A DNA stretch of 63,835 nucleotides, filler included, from Hyphochytrium catenoides (taxonomy: Eukaryota > Protista > Hyphochytriomycota): the NCBI GenBank assembly GCA_900088475.1. It is 9 parts of 9 records of this genome, joined end to end, with 100 filler letters (N's around TTAATTAATTAA, not from the genome) between each part and the next. Parts side by side here need not be neighbours in the genome. Positions count along the whole stretch, not along the records: positions 21,681 to 28,435 come from FLMG01001061.1; 8 more parts are not named here. One strand, written 5' to 3'. Positions within the stretch are counted from its first letter, which is position 1, and every line of letters starts with the position of its first letter. Both the position numbers and the translations under genes were made by a program. The notes under the pieces are model-generated. The model had not been told where the DNA came from. It saw only the letters and a program-made list of their open reading frames with translations, and did not search any database. This document shows positions 2,204-28,435 of the stretch, one piece after another.

Positions 2204-3132
2204 ACCGATGTTGAGCGCAGCGGTGGTTAGATATGCAGTTGCTTCTACGGCTTGGGGTCTTCCCCATCATTCTGCTAGAGCGTTTAATGCATGAATACCG
2301 AGTGACTCGCCTCTGCCAACCAAGCCCTCCCCCCCAAGAAAAGTTATCGCCTGCTTGTTGAGAGGCACGTGCTGCCTGCTGAGCGACTGCTTGGTCTGCT
2401 TCCTTCTTATGTCCAGGGTCACATAGAGACCGATATATGAGAGGTTTGCCTATGGAAACTATCGTTTGATGCTGCGTGTCGTCGGCACGGAAAGCCTGGA
2501 AGATCTGTGAGATAGCCGCATAGAGAGGAAGAGTCTCTGGATCTTGAGGTGGAGTGTCTGGCGGCATTTGCAATGTGCTGGCTGCTGTAGATAGCGAACT
2601 CCATTAAGGGGCGTAGGACGTATTGCGGCATGCTGGCGTTGACGCTGTCGATTGTTCACTTCTACCATTCGAGAAATTATTCATTTGTTCTTGGTGGTGA
2701 TGAAGGTTGGAGCAGGGTGTGTGAGTGGGAGGGTGTAGAGTTATGCCATTGTTTGAAAGGTATCTCCATGTCCCGGCGGAAACTGTGTGGCCAGCAGGTT
2801 GTTGGAGAATACGTTGTACGCTTCGAGGGGTATGTGAGGGGCTTGCTTGCGGACGGATCGCTGCTATCTTCAGCGTAATAAAGATACCTTTTTCAAAACA
2901 TGGCACAATTCTATACTACCCCGCTCACACACGCTGCTGCTTCAACCTTCACACCACCAAGAACAAATGGATAATCTCTCAAATGGTGACAAGTGACCAC
3001 CAGTCAACAGCGTCAACGCCAGCAGGCCACAATACGTCCTACCCGCCTTAATGTAGTTCCATCTACAGCCAGCCCCATGGCAAATGCCACCGGACACCCC
3101 ACCTCAAGATCCAGAGACTTTTCCTCCTCTGT

Positions 3133-3726
3133 ATGCCACTATCCACAGATCTCCCAGGAGCTTTCCGTGCCGACGAGACGCAGCATCGAGCGATAGTTTT
3201 CATAGGCAAACCTCTCATGTATCGGTTTCTGTGTGACCCTACCGGACATAAGGAGGAAGCAGACCAAGCACTCCCTCAGCAGCAGCACGCGCCTCTGGAC
3301 AAGCAGGCGATAATTGTTCTTGGAGGAGGGCCCTGCAGAGGCAAGTCAACGGCAATTCGTAAGGCTCTAGCAGAAAGATGGGGAAGAAGACCCCAAGCCG
3401 TAGAAGCAACTGCATATCTAACCACTGCTGTGCTCAACATCGGTGGCATGACAATGCACTCGGCCAGGAATCTTCACCCATGCAGCCACCACATGCTCAC
3501 ATCCGCTCCCACAGTCTCTCAAAAGCAACAGCAAGCGAAAATTGTGCTGCACATTATCGATGAGATATCAATAGTGCCAGCTCAACTCTTGGGAAACTTT
3601 GAGGAAGCAACTAGAACCTTCGCATGCGCTTCTGACAGACTCTTTGCCGGACATCACATACTCTTCGCAGGTGACTTGAAGCAGCTACCGTGCGTCCGTT
3701 CCCAGCCTTTGTTTGCCCAGCAATGA
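3133..3726 (+). pseudogene. Pif1-family DNA helicase fragment (motifs I-III), best-preserved copy
   Basis: ORF carries degenerate Walker A GPCRGKST, NIGGMTMHS, IIDEIS and GDLKQLPCV, and stops directly after motif III. Confidence 0.85.
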
Positions 3727-4185
3727 ATAGCTGCTAGTAGCGCAGAAATACAAGGACATACCATCTACATGAGCATCGGTGCCTCCGTCTTCAAAAAGCA
3801 TGCGCTGTCATCGTGACCAGTGGGCGCTTTCCTCGACTTAGAGAAGCCAGTGCCTGTCTCTCAAAATCGGTGGCACGACAATGCACTAGGCCAGAAACCT
3901 TCACCCATGCAGCCATCATATGCTCACATCCGGTCCCACAGTCTCTTCTCAACAGGCGGCAATCGTGCTGCCACTATTGCGATGCCAAAGATTAAGGACA
4001 TAAAAAGCGTAGTGTGAGTGGGGTGTAGACTTGTGCCATCTTCTGAAAGGTATCTTCAAGTCCCGCCGGGGACTGTGTGACCAGCAGGTTGTTGGAGAAG
4101 CGTACGTCGTACGATCGGTCGTGTTGACCCTGAGTGGGCGCAGTTCTTCCTCGAGTTAGAGAAGCCACCAGTGCATCTCTCTCAG

Positions 4186-5382
4186 CAACATCTGAGATAT
4201 ATCAACGCGAGACGATTCCAACTACCTCAGGATAGCGCGCCAGGAGTCATTCTTCCAATCGCTATCACCCTCCACAAGGTATCGCTTGCATATTTCGTTG
4301 AAAATAGCCGCTCATTCGTGTCTGCCCTAGGTTCGTTGCGCAGTCAACTTCCAGTTAACACGCTTTGTTATTCGACAGTTGCCATCAGCCAAGAGGCCCA
4401 CTGTCTATCAATGGGACGCGGAGATAATATCAAGAGGAGACTATCCCATCATCAGCTCACTTCGCCATCTTCCCGACTACGATACTGGGAGAGTCTGCAT
4501 GTCACTCGAGGCCTACTCAGGTAAACTCTATACTGCCCATACGCATTGCTTCTTGCACTCACAAAGCGAGAAGGCGTGCCCATCCAAATAGTATGAACCA
4601 TTTTCTGGGGCGCACTCGGTGTGGGCAACGGAGACAAAGGAAGTGTAGCTTGTGGAAGGCGCTATGGCGGGCTTGTGATCTTACCTCTATTTTGTGTTTT
4701 TCTGGAAGTAGAAGAAGATAGCCACTCGGAAGTCCAGGGTAGTGGGGTTGTTCTGCTCTTGATTCGCAGAGTTTCACGGGGACATAGTCTGCCACCTTCC
4801 ACCAAGAGCGAGAACTAGCCCCAAGGAACATAGTGCAGCAGCTACGGAAGGTGGTGCCAGACTATATTCTCATCAAACTCTGCGAACCAAGAGCAGAACA
4901 ACCCCACTACCCTGGACTTCCGAGTGGCTATCTTCTCCTACCTCCAGAAAAACAGAAGATAGAAATAAAGTCACAACCCCCGCCATAGCGCCTTCCGCAT
5001 AACTGTCTTCCAGGATGTTATCAGCCGGGCCTTCGCTCTCACACCTGAGAACTTACAGGGAGGCACACATCTCGGTGTCGTCAGACATGATGCAGTCTCT
5101 CCCAGCAACGTAGTTGGGAAGATGGCGGAGTGAGCTAATGTGATAGGCTGCTCTTGACCTTATCTCCGCGTCCCACTGATAGGCAGTAGGTCTCCTGGTC
5201 TGCTGGTAGTTGTTGAATGACGAAGCGTGTTACCTGGACGATGACTGCACAACGCACCTAGGGAAACATGAATTAGGGGTTAGATGCTAGCGATAGTATG
5301 TTGAGGGCGATAGCGATGGGAATATATTTTGAGACGCCCTGAGGAAGTGGATCCGTCTCGTGTTAAGATATCATAGATGTTG
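4186..5382. repeat. Large diverged inverted repeat 2 (arms about 4186-4800 and 4846-5382)
   Basis: gatagccactcggaagtccagggtagtggggttgttctgctctt (4717-4760) has its exact reverse complement at about 4889-4932. The outer arms 4186-4505 and 5080-5382 also align in inverted orientation. Confidence 0.9.
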
Positions 5383-8300
5383 GATCTGCAACAGTTAACG
5401 GAACTCAGATAAAATCGGTTCTTCGTCCTTCTTTACAGCTCATGAGGATCTGCTGCACAGGTCACCCGAGGAGGCAGGAAGTATATGATCTCACCTACCA
5501 GCTGTGTCCTCTTTCTTTTTCACCGCTTCTTTCTTTGCCTTCGTTGACGATGTCCTTGAACTCCTGAATAAAGAGAATGGACTTTACCAACCGTATTGTT
5601 CTCATCATCATCTGCATCCGGCTCAGAGGTTGGCAGAATGTGATGCCGCCGTACAGTCTGGTCTGTACGGTGGTCTGATGGCTGCTGATTAGCTTGGTTT
5701 AGCTTCTCTTGTAAGCCTTGGTTTCGGCTCTCATCTGCTCGACAAGAAGGTCAGTGAACTGGCAGACTGTGTCTGCTAGTGTTCGTGAGAGATCTTCTTA
5801 TCTGCCTTCTTGTTGTATAGACAGCAGCAGAGCAGCACTGCTCATCTAGGCCAGGGTTTGCTCAAGGGTGCGATTGTCTCGCTGCAGCATTTGGATTTCA
5901 GGGTTGCGGGTGCTTGTGCGGCTGCCGTTAGGCGGGCTGTTGGTTTCAGCCTCCACCAGTGTTGTTGGGATGCTCGCTCTTGTTGTTGAGCTTCATTAGG
6001 ATTGCGAGGAGTTGCTCCTCTTTTGGAAGGCATCCTCGCTTTAAATTGACCGGAACAACTGAGAGGTAAGGAGGAACGCAGAGGTCAGTGGTCTCGGCAG
6101 AGTTCTGCGCGCACGGCGGCGATGCGCCATCCATGTAAGGTCAGAATGGCAGGAGAAAGATCAGAATCGCATTATGTTAGAGCGCTCTTCTCCCAGCCAA
6201 TGCGAAGTGGGAAAGATCTCATTCTGGGTCCCGGGACTTGGAGGATGCCTGACGTGGGTTCCCACATCCCTGACACTACTACTTGCCTCGAAGGCTTAGC
6301 GAAACAAGAGGATTAGCCCACTTCCTACTAGAGTGTAGAAGAGCCAAGAAAGGAGAAGCACTGCGTAGCTAATAAGCCTGATAAAGACTACGAGGAAGGA
6401 AGCAGCACAAACACGCGAAAAAGAAGAAAGGGAAAAGATGAGAAGGGAGAAAGAGAATCCCCTAAAAAAAAAAGGCAAAACTAGGACAGCAGGGGAGAAC
6501 AGCGAACAAGCAACAAGAAGCAGCTCATGAAGGAAGCCACAGCAAGGAGGCAGCACGGCAGCCGCCAGAAGAGAAACCACCACCAAGCAAGCAAGTGGGA
6601 GCAGAGAAATAGCAAGCGACACACATGTACAGTATAACATGATGTGTCTGGCCTTACAACCCGTACTCCGATAAGAAATATTGGAAGTAGGTTCGACCAA
6701 GGTGTACGAGGAGCAAGCAGCAGATGGTTCAGAAGAAGCAACAAGACAACTAACAACCGGCATTTGCCCCATGATCTGGTACAACTAGGAGATCCTAGGC
6801 GATTGGCACCTCAAGCGACATTCCTAGGAGACACTGGTTTATAGATAGAACAGGAGCATTGGTTTAGTAGATACTCTGCTGGGCTAAACCTGGTCATCAC
6901 TTCTTTGGACAAGGCGTTTATATATTGAGGCAGCCCAACAACGAAGCCACAAGAAGTCCAGGTTTGAGCTCAGCAGCTTCCCACACACATCTTGTTTCTC
7001 CATTGTGGAAGCAGAGAGGCAAAGCTGGCTGGCCCTTCCCGCCGTCTCCTCCATTATCGCTGTGGCAGGATGTGGGGTTGCATCCTCTTTTCTGCACCAA
7101 GTTCTGCTTTTATCGGTACCCGTCGGTGGAAAGGTTAGAGGGCTATTAATTATTAGTTGTAATAGTAGTGAAAGATTTCGTTGAAGCAGGAGCAGCAGCA
7201 CCGCGCAGACAGGACCTAGAAGAAGAAAGTATCGAGGGAGAAACGAGGTAGTCGCCACTGTTGGGGCGGCATTGCTGCCAACATCATCATGGCTGCAAGA
7301 AGGGACGCTACAAAATAACAGAAAGGCAGTTTGTCTGAGAAGAAGGCATACTACGATGATGATGGTAGTAATGTGGAATAGCAGCTTTAGCAGAGCAGTG
7401 CACGCCGCCAGAAAAGAATGAAGAATCAGCGTACCATTCCTCCTGAGTGATGGCGCCGGGGAGGTAGTGAGGGGAGGAGGATCCACACAGCCAGTCATGA
7501 TCAAAAGGGAGTCCAATGGAGTAGGGAAGAGGAAGCCGTAGCAATACATCCTAGAGCAGCATACTTTACAATGTATGGTGCCGTAGAGGGCAAAGCATGA
7601 CATACAAATCATACTAAGATAGGCAGAAGAAGGAGGCAAAAGCAAGCAAAACAGCCGAGCACCAAAGCAAGCAGGAGTCACCAGAGGAGACTTGAGAAAG
7701 ACCCACAGACGTACAAAAGAGAGGACAAGAAAGCACGCCAAGACAGACGAGGTTGTCGTGGCCTCTCTCCTCCTTGGCGATAAGCAGCAGCAGCTCCCGC
7801 ACAACGACCTATCCACTAGTACTCGTACTATATATGACAATGCGGCCACCAGCAGCAGCCGAGCAATGGTGAGCTACGCACTCCAACTCCACGAGAAGAA
7901 GGGTGTTGCTCAGTAGGCAATGACTAATAGACGCTTATGATAATGGAGGAATAATAAGTGATGAAGTAGAAGAGGCTTACTATTCTCTGGTCAAGGAAGG
8001 AAGAGATCCAAGACAGGACGGCGTAGAGAGAAAAGAACTAGAGGGAAAGAGGGAGAGAGAAAGAGAGAGGGAGAGAGAGAGTGTGAAAGGAAGAGCCATT
8101 GCGGAGCGAGACAGAGACGACAGGGAGACAGGAAACCGAACATGAAGCCAAGGAAGAAGATCACACCTTCTTCAATCCTCTGCGCTTCCCGCCGCCATGT
8201 CCTCCTCCTCCACAGCGAGCAGAGTGAATGGATCTCTTACCTCGAGAAAGAGTGAGGAAGAGAGCAGATCTTCGCGGTGGACTTGCCATGGATTGAGAAG

Positions 8301-21680: not shown

Positions 21681-22444
21681 GCGACTCCAGAAGTTGAGGA
21701 GGAGGCTGCCAGGGAAGAGACAGAGCGAATGGATAAAGATTAGAAGAGGTAAGTGAGAGAAAGAGTGAGAGAGAGCAGGGAGGAGATAGGGCGAACGAAA
21801 GCGAGAGATTTGGTTTGATGGTGAGAGAGAGACAGAAGAAGAGACCATCAGATGGACCAAAGAGAGAGAGGGAGGGGGCGAGAGAGAGACAGAGAGAGAC
21901 AGAGAGAGAGAGAGAGTAGATGGACGCTTGCGGGTTCCACCTGAAAGATAGTGTTAGCAAACTCTGGGAGTTCAAGTTTCCGTCGAATGGCCGTGATAGC
22001 CAACTGAAGAGATGCCGCCACTGTCCGTTGGTCGCCGGGGAGAGAGCCCGCGGACTTTTCTTCTCCAGTGTTGGCATGAGAGAGAGAGGAGGACGCAAGA
22101 GGAGTCGAGGGCTCTTCTGCTCGGTTATTCTGGGAACGAACGGCGCGCGTGTCTGTCGCTTTTGTCTGCAGATAGTCCAGAACTTGACTTCGGCGGAAGC
22201 TTTTCGCTCTTGTCTCTCTTCTTTTCTTCTTCTCTCTCTCTTTATTCAACAGTCTTTTCTCTCCTGCGGTTCCTGGAGTGTCGCTCGGATTGGAGGCGAG
22301 TGGAGGCAGGAGAGAGGGAGGCAGCGTAAGACCAGTCGTCCCTTCTCTTTCTTTCTCTTCAACACACTCTGGTGAGGTGTGGGGCGAGGACTGCGGAGCG
22401 CCTCCGGGAAGTTGGCCCTGGCTTCCCCAGTAGAAGGCGCTCAT
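21681..22444 (-). CDS. 5' part of a spliced hypothetical protein, truncated by the scaffold end
   Basis: MSAFYWGSQG...PEFANTIFQ ends at a CAG|GTGGAA donor, followed by a CT-rich intron and a short in-phase exon (PPPQLLES). Contains a basic patch, KEREKKKRR. No family recognised. Confidence 0.45.
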
Positions 22445-22631
22445 AGGAGAGAGAGAATCCCTGTGGCTGGCGGTGTGGAGAGGGGAAAATAGAGAGAGAG
22501 AGAGAGAAGGGTCAAAGAAAGAGAGCTAGGAAGAGTCCGTGCATCGGGTCAGAACAAGGGGAATAGAGGAATATCTGGAGAAGTAGGAGACAGGAAAGGG
22601 AGACGATGAGCTTCAGAGAAGTGGATTGGGA

Positions 22632-22662
<31 letters not shown>

Positions 22663-23074
22663 TTGATGAGCAAGAGAGAGACCTACGGGGGCGGACTTTA
22701 AATCAGAGGGAAGAAGGAGGCGGGTGGCGGTGTTAGAGTGACACGGTGTGGGCCATAGTGACCGCCCTCAGCCTGGTGAAGGAAAGAAGAGCGAACGAGA
22801 AGGACAGAGCGAGAGACAATAAAACAGGAGGCGCAGATGGTACTGTTAGATACTCGCATGTAATGCGGACAGTAGGCGAGAGGAAATGTGGAGAGGGACT
22901 TGGGAGCAAGGAGGAGATAGATTAATGGATAGATACATAGATAGATAGAGGTAATAAAGGAGAAAAGAAGAGAGAGAGAGGGAGACTATGTGTGTGGGAG
23001 AGGCTATGTACGAGGAAGAGAGAGAGACACAGGAAGGAGAGCTAGAGCGAGAGCTAGAGAGAGCTAGAGAGAGC

Positions 23075-23114
<40 letters not shown>

Positions 23115-23381
23115 AGAGAAAGAGAGAAAAAAAAGAGGGAAAAGAGAAAGAGAGAGAGGACAAGAGAGTAAAGAAAGTCGTTACAGCTCTGTAATCGATG
23201 TCGTAAATAAATTATTGCTGATATCAGAATAATATGAATGATATTCTGAATATACGAGGGAAAGAGCCAGAAAGAGAGCCAGGACGTGCGTTGTTTCGAA
23301 AGTGCACTCTCTCCCCGGTATTGATATGATAGGCTTCTCCTTCTCCCCTCTCTCTTTCTCTCTCTCTCTGATCCTTCCTAC

Positions 23382-26300
23382 TCACATCACCTGGCATCGA
23401 TGCTGCAGCTTCTGTGAGACAGACAGCTGGGCGCGGTAGATTTGATGCCCTTGGATGTGCAGCTCCGTCAGCGCTCCGTCCGCCAGCGCCCACTCCAAGA
23501 TCACGCTGTACATGTTATTCGCTGGACGGTACCGCGTGACTAGGCCCAGACCGTACGGAGTGGAGACATGGTCTCCCACTGCCGCCGGCAGTCTGCCTTT
23601 GACTTGCTTAGGATGCAGATAGGCCCGAGCCATCAAGCTTGTCGCTACCTCCGCTGGCCCTGGTAACCCTTCCGTGTGCCAGCCTCTGATGTACTGCCTA
23701 GAGATGTAGAATGGCTGTGGCAACGAGACCACGTGCACGCCATCCACAGGCCGAACTTCCGTTAAGATGCCAGTGCCAAACGTTGTAAGGACTGGACTGC
23801 CAATCTCCCCAATCACGGCGAAAGAGACAATCTCTTTCTCCTGCAGATAGCAAATAACGCCTGGCATGCTGTGGAACTGAACGGTGTAGGTATTGTCCCA
23901 AGACCGGTAGTTTACGACCTCTCCAGTCCCAAACTTGCAGCGGACAAAAGCCCCAACGGAGTACTTGGCGAGCTCAACTGGTAGAGTATCTGAATCTGTT
24001 AGCCCTCTTTCCTGACCTCCTTTCCTGCCAGCGAGGAAGCGGACGCGGTCCAGCCATGAGCGTAGGGAGTTGGCAATGTGGAACGACTCTTCTCCTTCCC
24101 CGACGGCTCTCTGGTCTTCTTTTATGAGCAAGGAAAGCTGAACATACGCTACTGGGGCATTAGACACGATAGACTGATCCCCAGCAGCAGCTGCTTTCGC
24201 GGTTGACCCTTCTCTCTCATCAGGAGGTCGGTAGCGCAGACTCTCCAGTGCCACCTCAACCACGCCATCCGATGCCGCGGCGTCAGCAATAGCTGCCGCT
24301 GCCTTCATGCTCGGAGTGCTGGGCGTAGCATGTTCGGGCCATGGCGTCCGTTTATCACCTGTACGGCAAGAGATAACACGACCGGAGCCGAAGGGGGTCA
24401 CCACTTCGGTGATGGAGTCCTTCCGGGGTCTCGTTTCCCCAGGCGTTAGTCCCTCAAGGTCTGGAAGGTCCACCGTGGAGGAGAAGCGCTTGCGGAAGAA
24501 CCTAAAGAAGCCACCAGCGCGAGACTCTTTTCCTGCTAACTCCTGCGTCGTCAGCCGCACATGTCCTGGGTTAAGGAAGGCTTCCGCGCCTGGTTGGCTA
24601 AGGAGAGAGACGCAGAGCGTCCCATCCGGCCGCGTGGCATTCAGGATCCCAACCCCGAACACGGTCGAGACTGCGCTGCCCACCATCAGGACTGTCTTTG
24701 GCGACGAAGCTGGGACAGGCGCAGACTCTGGTGTTCTTCGGCCTGCGTTAAGCCTTAGGAATGACATGATGGCAGATGCTCTGTCACCCCTGATAGTTGC
24801 TGGCTGAGGCACTGGCAACGTCAGTGAAGGCCTCACGGGAGCAACATTGGCGATCCTGACATAGGCTCTGGCTGGTGTCGGCCCCTCCATCAAAGTCCAA
24901 ATGAGAACCTCAAAGGCATGATGGCCCTCATCGTAGCGCTGTACCACGCCATATCCAAACGGAGTCCAGACCACGATGCTTGTCGTGTCTCTATTAAGGG
25001 TGAGAACCTGGCTCTTATTGACTAGAAAGCTGTGCTTCAGCTCTGCAGTGGGCTTCGACTTCAGTAGAGAGTCTCGAGGGAGAGGTGTCATTACCTTTTG
25101 ATGCAAATAGGAATACGGAGGACCCCCGTCAGAGGAGAGAGAGACAGAGTAGACGCCGTCAATCCCTCTGAAGCTCTTGATAATGCCCAAGCCAAAGGGC
25201 GTGGAAACGATCATTCCTATGCGGAAAGATCTCTGATAAGAGACTAGGTTGAAGGTCTTGATGTTATGCTGTGCCAAGATCCGATTGGCTTCCATCAGAT
25301 CTTTGTTGACCTGCCATCGCGCGGCCTCTCTCCAGCCATCTGTCTTGAATTGGATCGCCTCAAACTGCTTCAGAACGTTGCGAGCGATGTATGCTAGGCC
25401 ATTCAACCGGATAAGGCGGCGGCGATAGGCGATGATTCCGGCCCCGATGTACGAGTCAAAAAAGAAGATCCGCATGTCTCGCCACTTCTCCTCAGCACCA
25501 GCATGAAAGCCGTAAGTCTTCTCTATCGGCTGCACGCGGTGGATGAATACAGCCTCTATGGCATCTTTAAAGCTGTAGCGATAGCGCGTTAGCAGTGATA
25601 TAGAGAGACAGATGACGAGAGAACGAGAGAGAAAGCAAGCAGTACATGTCGGGAATGGAACTAGGACGCCAGAATGAGAGAGAGAAAGAGGGGTTGCATA
25701 GCTGTGTCGCTAAGACAACGTAGGCACTGGCAGACAATGGCATTTCAGAGAAACAGGAGTGACTGAGAGTATAAGAGGAACTTTCCACGTACGTTTCCAC
25801 CATGAGCTCTGCGGCCTTGACATCTCCCTGTCCGTTGTCCCCTATGAAGACATGCGTAAACTCCGGGTAGAGCTGATAATACTGGGAGAAGTTCTCAAAC
25901 TTCTTGAGCGCCATTGGGCCCAGGTCTCCCTACGGAGCAAAAAGCAGGGGTCAGAACCACGGCAGAGCAGCTCAACATGTGGACATGGCAACCACAGCGC
26001 GGAAGACGGCCACCGGCAAGTTATAGACCGACGACAACCTCAAAACGAGGAGATAAGAAGGGAAACCGCCGAGGAGACAGATGGTTTGTCTCGGTCAGGA
26101 AAAGAGTCAAAGCCAGGCAAAGCCCACCAGAGGAATCAGCTTACCGATAGCATGAAAGATGAGCCCGACTGCAGGCTTCCAGCTAGCATGCTGGGCACAC
26201 AATGCAAACCCTTTGCCGCCATTTGAGTGAACTTTTGATAGCTTCTTCTCTCTGCCAAGTCCTTATATACGTGTGGCCGGGCAGAGAGGAAGACCAGGTT

Positions 26301-28435
26301 TCCTACTCTATCAGTCTCCCATATATCTGGGCCATTAAGTCCCATATCCAGCTGCTGAAAGAACTCTAGCACCCCGGGGTAGATCTGATGGTGTGGGTAG
26401 GAGACATCAATTCCAGCTGGATACTTTCCTCCAGAAGAAAAGAGAGTGTCATCGACGTCGGAGAGAATCTTCCTCCAAGGCTTCTCTCTTCTCATTCTCG
26501 CATACTTGGTTCCTAGGGCCATGTGAGCCGCCTGTACCTTGGCTTGCTGCTGTATATGTTGGATAATATCGCCTAAGGGCACAAGCCAAACAGATGAAGA
26601 TGAGAGACTTCTGCCATTCAGGGCCGGAGAACAAGTGCAGAGGTAGGACTGATTATTCTTACAAACAAACCTACGGTTTAGAAGCAATGTTGAAGAAGCG
26701 CTCAGGCTGATGTTAGTCGACAACAGCCAAAGAGGCTCAATAGAAGTGCAATGCTAGCCAAAGTGGAGAGGGTGAAGCAGATCTTACGTCTTATCTCCGG
26801 ATCAGTTATGTCGTTGTAAACGAGCTTGTGCATGCTGTGAATATCTCCTTTGGAGTCCGTCAAGCTCTTGAGCTATGATAAAGCATTAGCTCAGGGCCCC
26901 ACGTGGTTTGAAGCCAACGAGATGGGAAGAACATAGTAGGTCAGAGGGAACAGGCAAGAGGAAGACCAGGTACGCAGCATTATGAGTGGCCGCGCAAGAC
27001 CACTAGTAAGAAGAGATTAGAAGACAGAGAAGGGGATAGAGAGGAAAGTCGCTGCTTCTACCAGGCTAAGATCGTCTCCTGTGGTCTTAAGGATAATATT
27101 GCGGACGTATCTCTGCGCTTGATGATGTGCTGAGAGTCTGAAGATCATCAGCGCGTCAAGCAGCAAAACCCGAGAAGAAATGGAAAGGTCAGCTAGGCGA
27201 TTGGCACAGAGAAGCTCCATGATTGCGGTCCGGTGCTTGGTGTCAGGGGTACCGTGGTCTTTTACCTGTCGTACAAAGGAGGACGTGATAAGCAGAGCCT
27301 TCTTGCAGTGTGGCGTAGTAAAGATAAGAGCCAAAGGATGAGGAGACATGTACCTTATACATGACCAGCGCCAGCTTGGCGTGCCTAACAATGTAGTTGA
27401 GCTCCTCTTTGGAAGCTCCGGTGAGTATACGCAGGATCTTTTGCTCCTGAGAAGATAAGACAGACCAAAACAGAGAGGAACGCAAGCCCAACAGCAGCGC
27501 ACATATGAGAAACGATAAGAATCACTCTCAACGTGTCATGTCGTGTCAACAGACGCGCCCGTGCGAACATAGGTAAGACCCACGCCGGAGAAGCAAGGAA
27601 TGTCCACAGAGCTGAGAAGAACAGGTTCTGAGCCAGATGACTATGCCACATACTCGTGCTGGTGCAACGAGAGAGAGAGAGAGAGAGAAGAGAGGAGACA
27701 CTCCAAGAGCGAGCCGAGAGACGAACGGATAAAGGAAGAGAAAGCGCGCCGATTTGTCAGCAGTCACCTGTCTTATAACTTTCTTATAATCAAAAATGCT
27801 GGACACTGTAGAGGGCAGATAGAAGCTGTCTATCTCTGCCAGACAAGCGTGAATCATCAGTGTCTTCTCTTCCGCAGAGACCTTATATTTGAAGAGATGC
27901 TCCTGACGGATGATCTTTTTCAAGTGCTACAGAGAACGAAGAGTTCAGATGTTTGAAGAATGGCCGCGGGCAAGGCACGGAGAAAGGTAGAGCAAGGCTG
28001 AGGCGCGAGGACCAGGGAAAGCAAGGGGATGTAGACTTATGTGTGTCTTAGCATCGTGCGGTGGAGAAAGTAGGAACTAATCTGACACATAGTGAAGAAG
28101 GGAGAGGAGAGACAGACACCACAATGGCAGCACAAATTGGATCCAGGATCAGCAAGAACAAGAACCTATGTGCAGAGGCTGAATGCCCCGCCCCCCAAAA
28201 ACACAGAGAGTTGGAGCCAGCGAGGACTGGCCCTAGTCAAAGGAAAGAGGCAGCGAGGTGAGAGAACCCAGAAAGAAAGACGACTCCACTACGAAGCTTT
28301 TCCCTCTCGATGAACGCACTCACCCCCCAGCTCGCATTCCTGGACATCATCGGTCGGCGACTGATTGCCACTCTGTGCAGGTGTCTATCGTAAGTGTGGA
28401 CTGCGAAGGTGAGCGAGAACACTAGGACGCCGCCG
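23382..28435 (-). CDS. Multi-exon HAD-superfamily phosphatase (APP1/DUF2183-like) with seven C-terminal TPFG-type repeats and a CaaX box; 5'-truncated
   Basis: KILSDVDDTL (DxDxT), YPGVLEFF, LVFLSARP, FIGDNGQGD, IEAVFIHRV. The last exon is about 2.2 kb, holds repeated V-x-T-P-F-G-x-G motifs and ends in CQVM-stop. GT-AG boundaries were traced for most exons. Confidence 0.8.

Follow-up and report, generated by a model that had tools for sequence, protein, structure and literature searches.

Phosphatidic acid (PA) and diacylglycerol (DAG) are central lipid signals, and the known soluble PA phosphatases (lipin/Pah1 and App1) reach membranes by amphipathic helices or SH3-binding motifs. A gene of the hyphochytrid Hyphochytrium catenoides raises the question of whether a phosphatase of this kind can carry its own lipid anchor together with an array of binding modules. 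The gene lies in record FLMG01001061.1 (assembly GCA_900088475.1), which occupies positions 21681–28435 of a 63,835-nucleotide stretch made of nine joined parts, filler included; we call this whole stretch the window, and all coordinates count along it. An initial annotation, made from the sequence alone, had read the locus as an APP1-like phosphatase of the haloacid dehalogenase (HAD) class fused to seven repeats and a C-terminal prenylation signal.

Our analysis shows that the encoded protein has an alpha-helical, ARM/HEAT-like N-terminus, a DxDxT HAD domain, a helical linker, seven SH3-like barrels of about 50 residues each and a CaaX box, in that order. It belongs, as an oomycete-type member, to a family found across stramenopiles whose proteins measure roughly 1100–1300 residues. 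We consider it probable, with moderate confidence, that this protein, which combines a phosphatase-like HAD domain of the APP1 kind with Tudor/KOW-class barrels and a CaaX box, works by farnesyl-tethered hydrolysis of lipid phosphates.

Gene structure

The minus strand of positions 21681–28435 (G+C ~52%) carries one gene with at least eight exons that runs from 28435 to 23382. The only long uninterrupted open reading frame (ORF) of this piece, also on the minus strand, spans 717 codons. Exons were derived from short open minus-strand segments bounded by AG and GT, and the introns between them are all of the GT-AG type, measure 88–397 nt and have consistent phases. The 5′ end of the gene is cut by the edge of the piece at 28435; judged against the closest relative, a Pythium oligandrum protein (P0001), about 150 N-terminal residues lie outside.

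Exon 0 (28324–28435, partial) and exon A (27768–27926, 53 codons, with an AG acceptor and a GT donor) encode parts of the N-terminal helical domain. By tblastn, positions 28434–28342 align with residues 149–179 of P0001 and 104–130 of a second relative, P0026, and a consensus GTGAGT donor in phase 0 follows directly after 28324; exon A aligns by blastp with P0001 residues 182–229. Exon B (27354–27446, 31 codons), exon C (27062–27265, 68 codons) and exon D (26788–26872, 28 codons plus one base, in a phase that fits exon E) match P0001 residues 230–260 (58% identity), 261–328 (59% identity, E = 3e-24) and 330–357 (68% identity), respectively, in blastp comparisons. The same method aligns exon E (26145–26572), which holds the first part of the HAD/APP1-like domain, with residues 359–500 (63% identity, E = 1e-63) and exon F (25793–25929), which holds HAD motif IV, with residues 502–546 (78% identity). 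The last exon, G (23382–25572, stop codon included), is a single ORF that contributes the end of the HAD domain, the helical linker, the seven barrels and the CaaX box, and it aligns with P0001 residues 551–1275.

All searches of the window protein were run with single exons; the alignment columns of exons E and F were concatenated only for a rough tree. Compared exon by exon using blastp and tblastn, the gene is colinear with P0001 to the last residue, and every junction is free of gaps and overlaps; the same junction-by-junction colinearity extends to more than 100 full-length orthologues, with all reading frames open. In a 57-row alignment, the window protein matches 95 of the 105 columns that are at least 80% conserved, and of the ten mismatches, four or five come from an exon tail misplaced in the display. 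The HAD domain is divided among three exons, and the junction between exons F and G splits a codon inside it. Because the exon junctions are colinear without gaps with intact orthologues and a codon of the HAD domain itself is split between exons F and G, we conclude from comparative sequence that a single predicted protein, conserved and intact, contains both the phosphatase and the repeats.

The contents given by the initial annotation (intact catalytic motifs, seven repeats and a terminal CQVM) were all found on the minus strand. Of the interval that it had assigned to them, 23382–26480, the 3′ end stands and the extent does not, as the catalytic motifs occupy two exons and the gene reaches 28435.

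Catalytic domain

Exon E contains motif I, SDVDDT (26445–26462), a DxDxT motif with the nucleophilic Asp, followed by motif II, LSARP (26274–26288), and the sequence HVYKD (26259–26273), which supplies the lysine of HAD motif III. Motif IV, GDNGQGD (25822–25842), lies in exon F; all four are on the minus strand. These catalytic motifs are at least 80% conserved over 50 relatives (alignment A2), with the family consensus FLSARPHvYKD and GDNGQGDV.

All eight orthologues that were scanned against Pfam exceed the gathering score of APP1_cat (PF09949), by a narrow margin only (28–37 bits against 27.1), and match no other family. An AlphaFold2 (AF2) model was made with alignment A2 from residues 175–745 of P0001, the closest orthologue, rather than from the window protein. 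The model (pLDDT 90.8, pTM 0.90) begins with a helical N-terminal domain, continues into an α/β HAD core and, by way of a helical linker, ends in the first barrel. Among 48,161 chains compared with VIA-align, its best match is the C-terminal (LNS2) domain of Nir2 with bound phosphatidic acid (Z 12.1), followed by GmhB (Z 10.5), dozens of HAD phosphatases (Z 8–9.6) and Tetrahymena lipin (Z 8.8). The N-terminal helices of the model match ARM/HEAT-like proteins at Z 8.5–10. The resemblance to lipin and LNS2 is structural only: Pfam scans of the window exons and the eight orthologues gave no N-LIP or LNS2 signature. Foldseek was uninformative with the 571-residue multi-domain model, giving no more than meaningless global matches at TM < 0.2; sequence searches of the PDB with exon E, exon G and an N-terminal/HAD profile returned nothing significant, and an NCBIfam search gave no match.

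The HAD fold and the intact motifs are thus established, and the domain belongs to the APP1 kind as a distant member; the APP1-like assignment in the initial annotation is borne out by the orthologues above the Pfam cut-off and by the HAD fold of the orthologue model. The marginal APP1_cat membership, taken with the likeness to LNS2 and lipin, points by analogy to a lipid phosphate as the probable substrate.

Barrel repeats

The translation of exon G contains seven matches to [VI]x[TCS]x[FY]GxG, at residues 122, 201, 301, 390, 543, 594 and 669; in 5000 shuffles of the same protein the motif occurred 0.008 times on average and at most twice. Iteration over the window and its relatives gave a 49-position hidden Markov model (HMM) of the repeat, with the consensus FAVGDRVLTPYGVGVVVSFRPSDGIYEVELDLAWGAATAYLQASSVKKL. 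This HMM detects 492 repeats in 146 of 154 sequences (153 relatives plus the window exon G), and the repeats share the signature G-x-x-V-x-T-P-[FY]-G-x-G-x-V...R-x-x-D-G-x-Y-x-V-x-L...A-Y-L.

The model recovers all seven window repeats, R4 only partly owing to long insertions. On the minus strand, these are R1 (25080–25226, 49.7 bits), R2 (24834–24974, 28.1 bits), R3 (24552–24686, 30.4 bits), R4 (24117–24410, 12.6 bits over the first hairpin only), R5 (23820–23963, 47.5 bits), R6 (23601–23807, 35.0 bits) and R7 (23430–23585, 47.7 bits). R4 appears to contain two long low-complexity insertions, and its presumptive later strands, DGVVEVAL and APVAYVQL, were placed by eye; R6 has an insertion before its last strands. 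The inserted loops of R4 and R6 are apparently rich in Ala, Pro and Ser.

The window R1, modeled by AF2 with 142 other repeats as the alignment, forms a small β-barrel of four strands plus a short fifth (pLDDT 88.4). Foldseek places it with the SGF29 Tudor domain and the NusG KOW domain at TM 0.76–0.79, and its best matches, which include the PHF1 Tudor and Agenet domains, span TM 0.7–0.79 with E values of ~0.007–0.05. VIA-align gives Z 8.5 for NusG KOW and 8.1 for the LBR and PHF19 Tudor domains, where a Z of about 8 for small barrels is a level that VIA-align itself calls common. The predicted fold of R1 is therefore of the SH3-like, Tudor/KOW type as a class, and the Z values do not establish a specific family within it. 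This agrees with the earlier guess of SH3/KOW/Tudor-like barrels. The high pTM of the orthologue model that contains R1 suggests that this barrel probably packs against the catalytic module.

At E ≤ 0.01, a set of 143 repeats gave no match to a Pfam family, Tudor, KOW and SH3 included; below threshold, the repeats match DUF4537 and the PcrA/UvrD and PTM/DIR17 Tudor families. A search of the repeat profile against the PDB by sequence gave nothing significant either, and the repeats thus match no family characterised so far in either collection. We conclude that the barrels belong to a known fold class and to no described family, and that they constitute an undescribed domain family.

Seven repeats are present not only in the window but also in Pythium, Thraustotheca and Aphanomyces. 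R1, R5, R6 and R7 each pair best with the repeat at the same position of P0001 and are positional orthologues, and the repeats within the window protein are only weakly alike, which together argue that the array is old rather than a recent expansion. The linkers between repeats are poorly conserved.

Arrays of three to eight repeats occur in stramenopile proteins, with C2, PDZ, RING-H2 and TPR domains among the partners. One relative combines a C2 domain, four repeats and a PDZ domain (P0060), and two combine RING-H2 with repeats (P0093 and P0134). In the ESM Atlas, a barrel cluster of 341 members, commonest in oomycetes, carries APP1_cat in 64%, and the barrel also occurs in an oomycete C2/TPR cluster (labeled “putative peptidylprolyl isomerase”) and in a diatom cluster with an MTHFR domain. 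Since it is found with these other partners, the barrel is a mobile module that is not peculiar to the phosphatase.

C-terminal CaaX box

The window protein ends in CQVM (23385–23396, minus strand), 15 residues after R7 and with the stop codon (23382–23384) directly behind it. By the rules for CaaX boxes, Met at the X position and Val at a2 fit the farnesyltransferase type, and CQVM is accordingly a putative farnesylation signal. Conservation of the box, which the initial annotation had proposed to check, was found in 45 of 54 oomycete orthologues: these end in CxxM, 12–15 residues after the last of seven (in a few, eight) repeats. The ends of the nine exceptions look shortened, altered or mis-modeled.

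Among the 150 relatives listed, 34 have Cys at position –4, against an expectation of 1.2% (P = 1.7e-32), and the box usually lies 10–16 residues past the last repeat. The X residue of these 34 is Met in 18, Gln in eight, Ser in four and Ala in three, and a2 is Val or Ile in 31.

Two further observations concern the C-termini of individual relatives. Albugo laibachii P0224 ends in ...QCKVM and Albugo candida P0225 in ...QCKVINIF; judged from the sequence, the latter seems to reflect a 3′ end wrongly called in the deposited annotation rather than loss of the CaaX box. Ochrophyte relatives (P0232–P0291) have five or six repeats and Ser/Arg/Lys-rich tails that extend 45–65 residues beyond the last of them, and several diatom forms have Arg or Lys in place of the oomycete Cys (for example ...STRSLI and ...SRSLL).

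Distribution of the family

Exon G has 226 relatives in an exhaustive HMMER search, headed by P0001, a hypothetical protein of 1275 residues (E = 1.8e-56). Even this relative is merely 36% identical over exon G, and none in the library of 1.84 billion proteins exceeds 50% identity, so that library seems not to have sampled the source lineage. Word-index protein searches with exon G found nothing because the protein is too divergent for shared 5-mers, and an ESM Atlas feature search gave no usable match. The same kind of word search seeded with P0001 retrieved 417 proteins, from the oomycetes Pythium, Globisporangium, Lagenidium, Phytophthora, Peronospora, Plasmopara, Bremia, Albugo, Saprolegnia, Achlya and Aphanomyces, as well as from diatoms, brown algae and Triparma. 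The family is thus present in all oomycete genera sampled and in diatoms and brown algae, and its named members are all stramenopile.

In a rough tree of HAD exons E and F, the window protein stands beside three named oomycetes. A coccidian, Toxoplasma-like origin, which the CT-rich introns might suggest, is rejected, since every named relative is a stramenopile and the window protein falls in with the oomycete type. Its layout is of the oomycete type, given the seven repeats and a CQVM 15 residues after R7. The architecture is therefore not unique to this genome; it belongs to a widespread stramenopile family for which a literature search returned no published study, of either the family or the architecture. 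Hundreds of orthologues are labeled in databases only as “hypothetical” or “APP1 catalytic domain-containing”, and the earlier remark that no characterised protein of this architecture was known agrees with that search. The novelty lies in a well-supported, unstudied domain architecture and not in a new principle.

The gene is much more intron-rich than is usual for oomycete genes, which are generally far poorer in introns, though its HAD exons group with those of oomycetes. On Logan contig L001 (SRR27418475), positions 2509–7320 hold a homologue that ends in CNVM and adjoins a DnaJ gene. Gene calling divides it into seven short ORFs in succession, all on the same strand; it is probably a further intron-containing copy in a eukaryote. 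A proteome paper on Plasmopara viticola names a “phosphatidate phosphatase APP1” (PVIT_0002769.T1), which is a candidate member of the family.

Proposed mechanism and alternative explanations

In the mechanism that we propose, the CaaX cysteine would be farnesylated and processed, tethering the C-terminus to the cytosolic face of a membrane and thereby keeping the HAD domain close to the bilayer. There, the HAD domain would dephosphorylate phosphatidate or a related lipid monoester (lysophosphatidate or diacylglycerol pyrophosphate), with the first Asp of DVDDT as the nucleophile and Mg2+ as the cofactor. The barrels would act as protein-binding or spacing modules that set the site of enzyme action on the membrane. 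The descriptions phosphatidate phosphatase, farnesylated and multivalent scaffold, and likewise a ligand for the barrels, are what we infer from the domain content of the protein. A more specific proposal, in which the barrels form an undescribed stramenopile family of ligand-binding repeats that directs a phosphatidate phosphatase with a farnesyl anchor to one particular platform, membrane or cytoskeletal, is put forward tentatively.

Several observations weigh against this mechanism. The window exons taken singly fall below the Pfam cut-off for APP1_cat: exon F, which covers profile positions 105–143, scores 16.2 bits (E = 0.01) and exon E has no match. Such weak scores are expected of a domain that is split over three exons; the orthologues, as noted, clear the cut-off narrowly. 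The HAD domain represents a distant APP1 branch, and its substrate may differ from that of App1. Nir2 LNS2, the domain with the nearest solved fold, binds lipid and is not known to be catalytic. The conserved residues of the barrels are found mostly at turns and in the core, as a purely structural role would allow, and the Z values of about 8 carry the limit given above. No CaaX box occurs in any of the 60 ochrophyte relatives. Prenyl anchoring is consequently not essential to the family as a whole, and membrane targeting must differ between the two branches. Lastly, a search of sequencing runs for RNA evidence listed none for the stretch; the evidence for a single gene is comparative.

The alternative that survives best keeps the architecture and assigns the HAD domain a substrate other than a lipid, such as a soluble phosphomonoester or else a phosphoprotein, with the APP1 likeness reflecting only shared HAD ancestry. 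Orthologue scores just 1–10 bits over the APP1_cat cut-off leave room for this, as do the many generic HAD sugar- and nucleotide-phosphatases at Z 8–10.5, near the best match, and the lack of a PDB relative by sequence. Set against these are the top structural match, the phosphatidic-acid-binding LNS2 domain at Z 12.1, with lipin also among the matches; APP1_cat as the sole Pfam family found; and a conserved membrane anchor that suits a membrane-resident substrate. We regard a non-lipid substrate as unlikely.

Alternatively, the barrels could be true Tudor readers of methylated lysine or arginine, through which methyl marks on a partner protein would recruit the protein. In fold, the nearest domains are the Tudor domains of SGF29, PHF1/PHF19, LBR and SMN, the consensus holds conserved aromatics (F/Y of TP[FY]G, the Tyr residues of DGxY and AYL, and a Trp), and the sub-threshold DUF4537 and PTM/DIR17 Tudor matches point weakly the same way. 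KOW and other SH3-like barrels score equally well, however, no Pfam Tudor family reaches threshold in the 143 repeats, and the partner domains C2, PDZ, RING-H2 and TPR indicate cytosolic or membrane contexts and not chromatin. Methyl-mark reading is thus quite improbable as the role of the array.

A non-catalytic role, in which the HAD-like domain binds PA as Nir2 LNS2 does, without hydrolysis, and the protein serves as a PA sensor or tether, would fit the best match in fold, which is to the C-terminal domain of Nir2 bound to phosphatidic acid. DVDDT, the Ser of LSARP, the Lys of HVYKD and GDNGQGD are nevertheless all intact in the window, and 50 relatives conserve them at a level of 80% or more. 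Such conservation is expected of an active enzyme, which is why we favor catalysis and consider a pure sensor slightly less probable still than a methyl reader. The weakest alternative, that the phosphatase exons and the repeat exon belong to neighboring genes or that the locus is a pseudogene, draws on the fact that no transcript data were obtained and is highly improbable in view of the colinearity with more than 100 full-length orthologues at each junction, the open frames and retained conserved residues, and the F/G junction that cuts a codon within the HAD domain.

Comparison with known systems

Farnesyl-tethered hydrolysis of a lipid phosphate would set this family apart from the enzymes that it most resembles. 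Its likeness to Saccharomyces cerevisiae App1, the actin-patch phosphatidate phosphatase of PF09949, lies in the DxDxT HAD catalytic domain, and the similarity is marginal (28–37 bits). App1 is recruited through its own proline-rich motifs, which bind SH3 domains of other proteins, whereas the window-type enzyme itself bears seven SH3-like barrels, an ARM-like N-terminus and a CaaX box. Yeast App1 acts on phosphatidate, lysophosphatidate and diacylglycerol pyrophosphate; it is a non-biosynthetic lipid phosphatase that is peripheral and accepts a broad range of lipid phosphates (PMC11832324). Lipin/Pah1 and Nir2 LNS2 (PDB 9jtz and 6tzz) share with the family a HAD fold that binds or hydrolyzes phosphatidic acid; lipins use an amphipathic helix under phosphorylation control, in contrast to the prenyl anchor predicted here.

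A further protist protein, Toxoplasma gondii GRA38, is an APP1-like HAD protein of the dense granules that resides in the parasitophorous vacuole lumen; it resembles the family as a DxDxT protein placed in the APP1 kind by structure comparison (PMC12711892). The two were compared by description only, and the portion of the paper text that was searched makes no mention of a CaaX box or prenylation in GRA38 (PMC12711892). Among the rows examined of Table S5 of a Toxoplasma prenylome, several “hypothetical proteins” carry a CaaX box and none ends in CQVM.

The barrels of SGF29, PHF1/PHF19, LBR, NusG and Spt5 resemble the family repeats in having five strands and about 50 residues, with TM 0.7–0.79, Z 7–8.5 and a root-mean-square deviation of 1.5–2 Å over at least 50 residues. 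Unlike those Tudor, KOW and SH3-like barrels, the family repeats belong to no Pfam family, have a signature of their own and form arrays of three to eight in cytosolic, membrane-linked stramenopile proteins.

Membrane tethering of a phosphatase by a C-terminal CaaX farnesyl group is known from INPP5A/INPP5E and PRL/PTP4A, which have 5-phosphatase and PTP folds, respectively. These catalytic folds are unrelated to HAD, and the enzymes lack barrel repeats. PRL orthologues are present in apicomplexan prenylomes. We know of no prenyl-anchored PA phosphatase, and a literature search for one returned none.

If the mechanism holds, a permanently lipid-anchored, PA-phosphatase-like enzyme with a reader-like array of barrels would be a different answer to the problem of membrane access. 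Were the barrels also to target the enzyme, this would be a new way to place PA-to-DAG conversion in space, shared by all the oomycete genera sampled, among them major crop pathogens, and lacking in animals, plants and fungi. The family has been kept from Albugo to Phytophthora and Saprolegnia, and no named member was seen outside the stramenopiles; on these grounds it is a candidate lineage-specific lipid-signaling node in a group that includes major plant and fish pathogens. The repeat, as an undescribed domain family, could enter domain databases.

Flanking sequence

An Rfam scan of positions 21681–28435 gave no match. Microsatellites of the (AG)n/(GA)n type occupy 21861–21916, 22630–22662 and 23017–23158 in the downstream flank and read as CT-rich on the gene strand; ORFs called there are low-complexity translations and not genes. 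The introns of the gene are likewise CT-rich.

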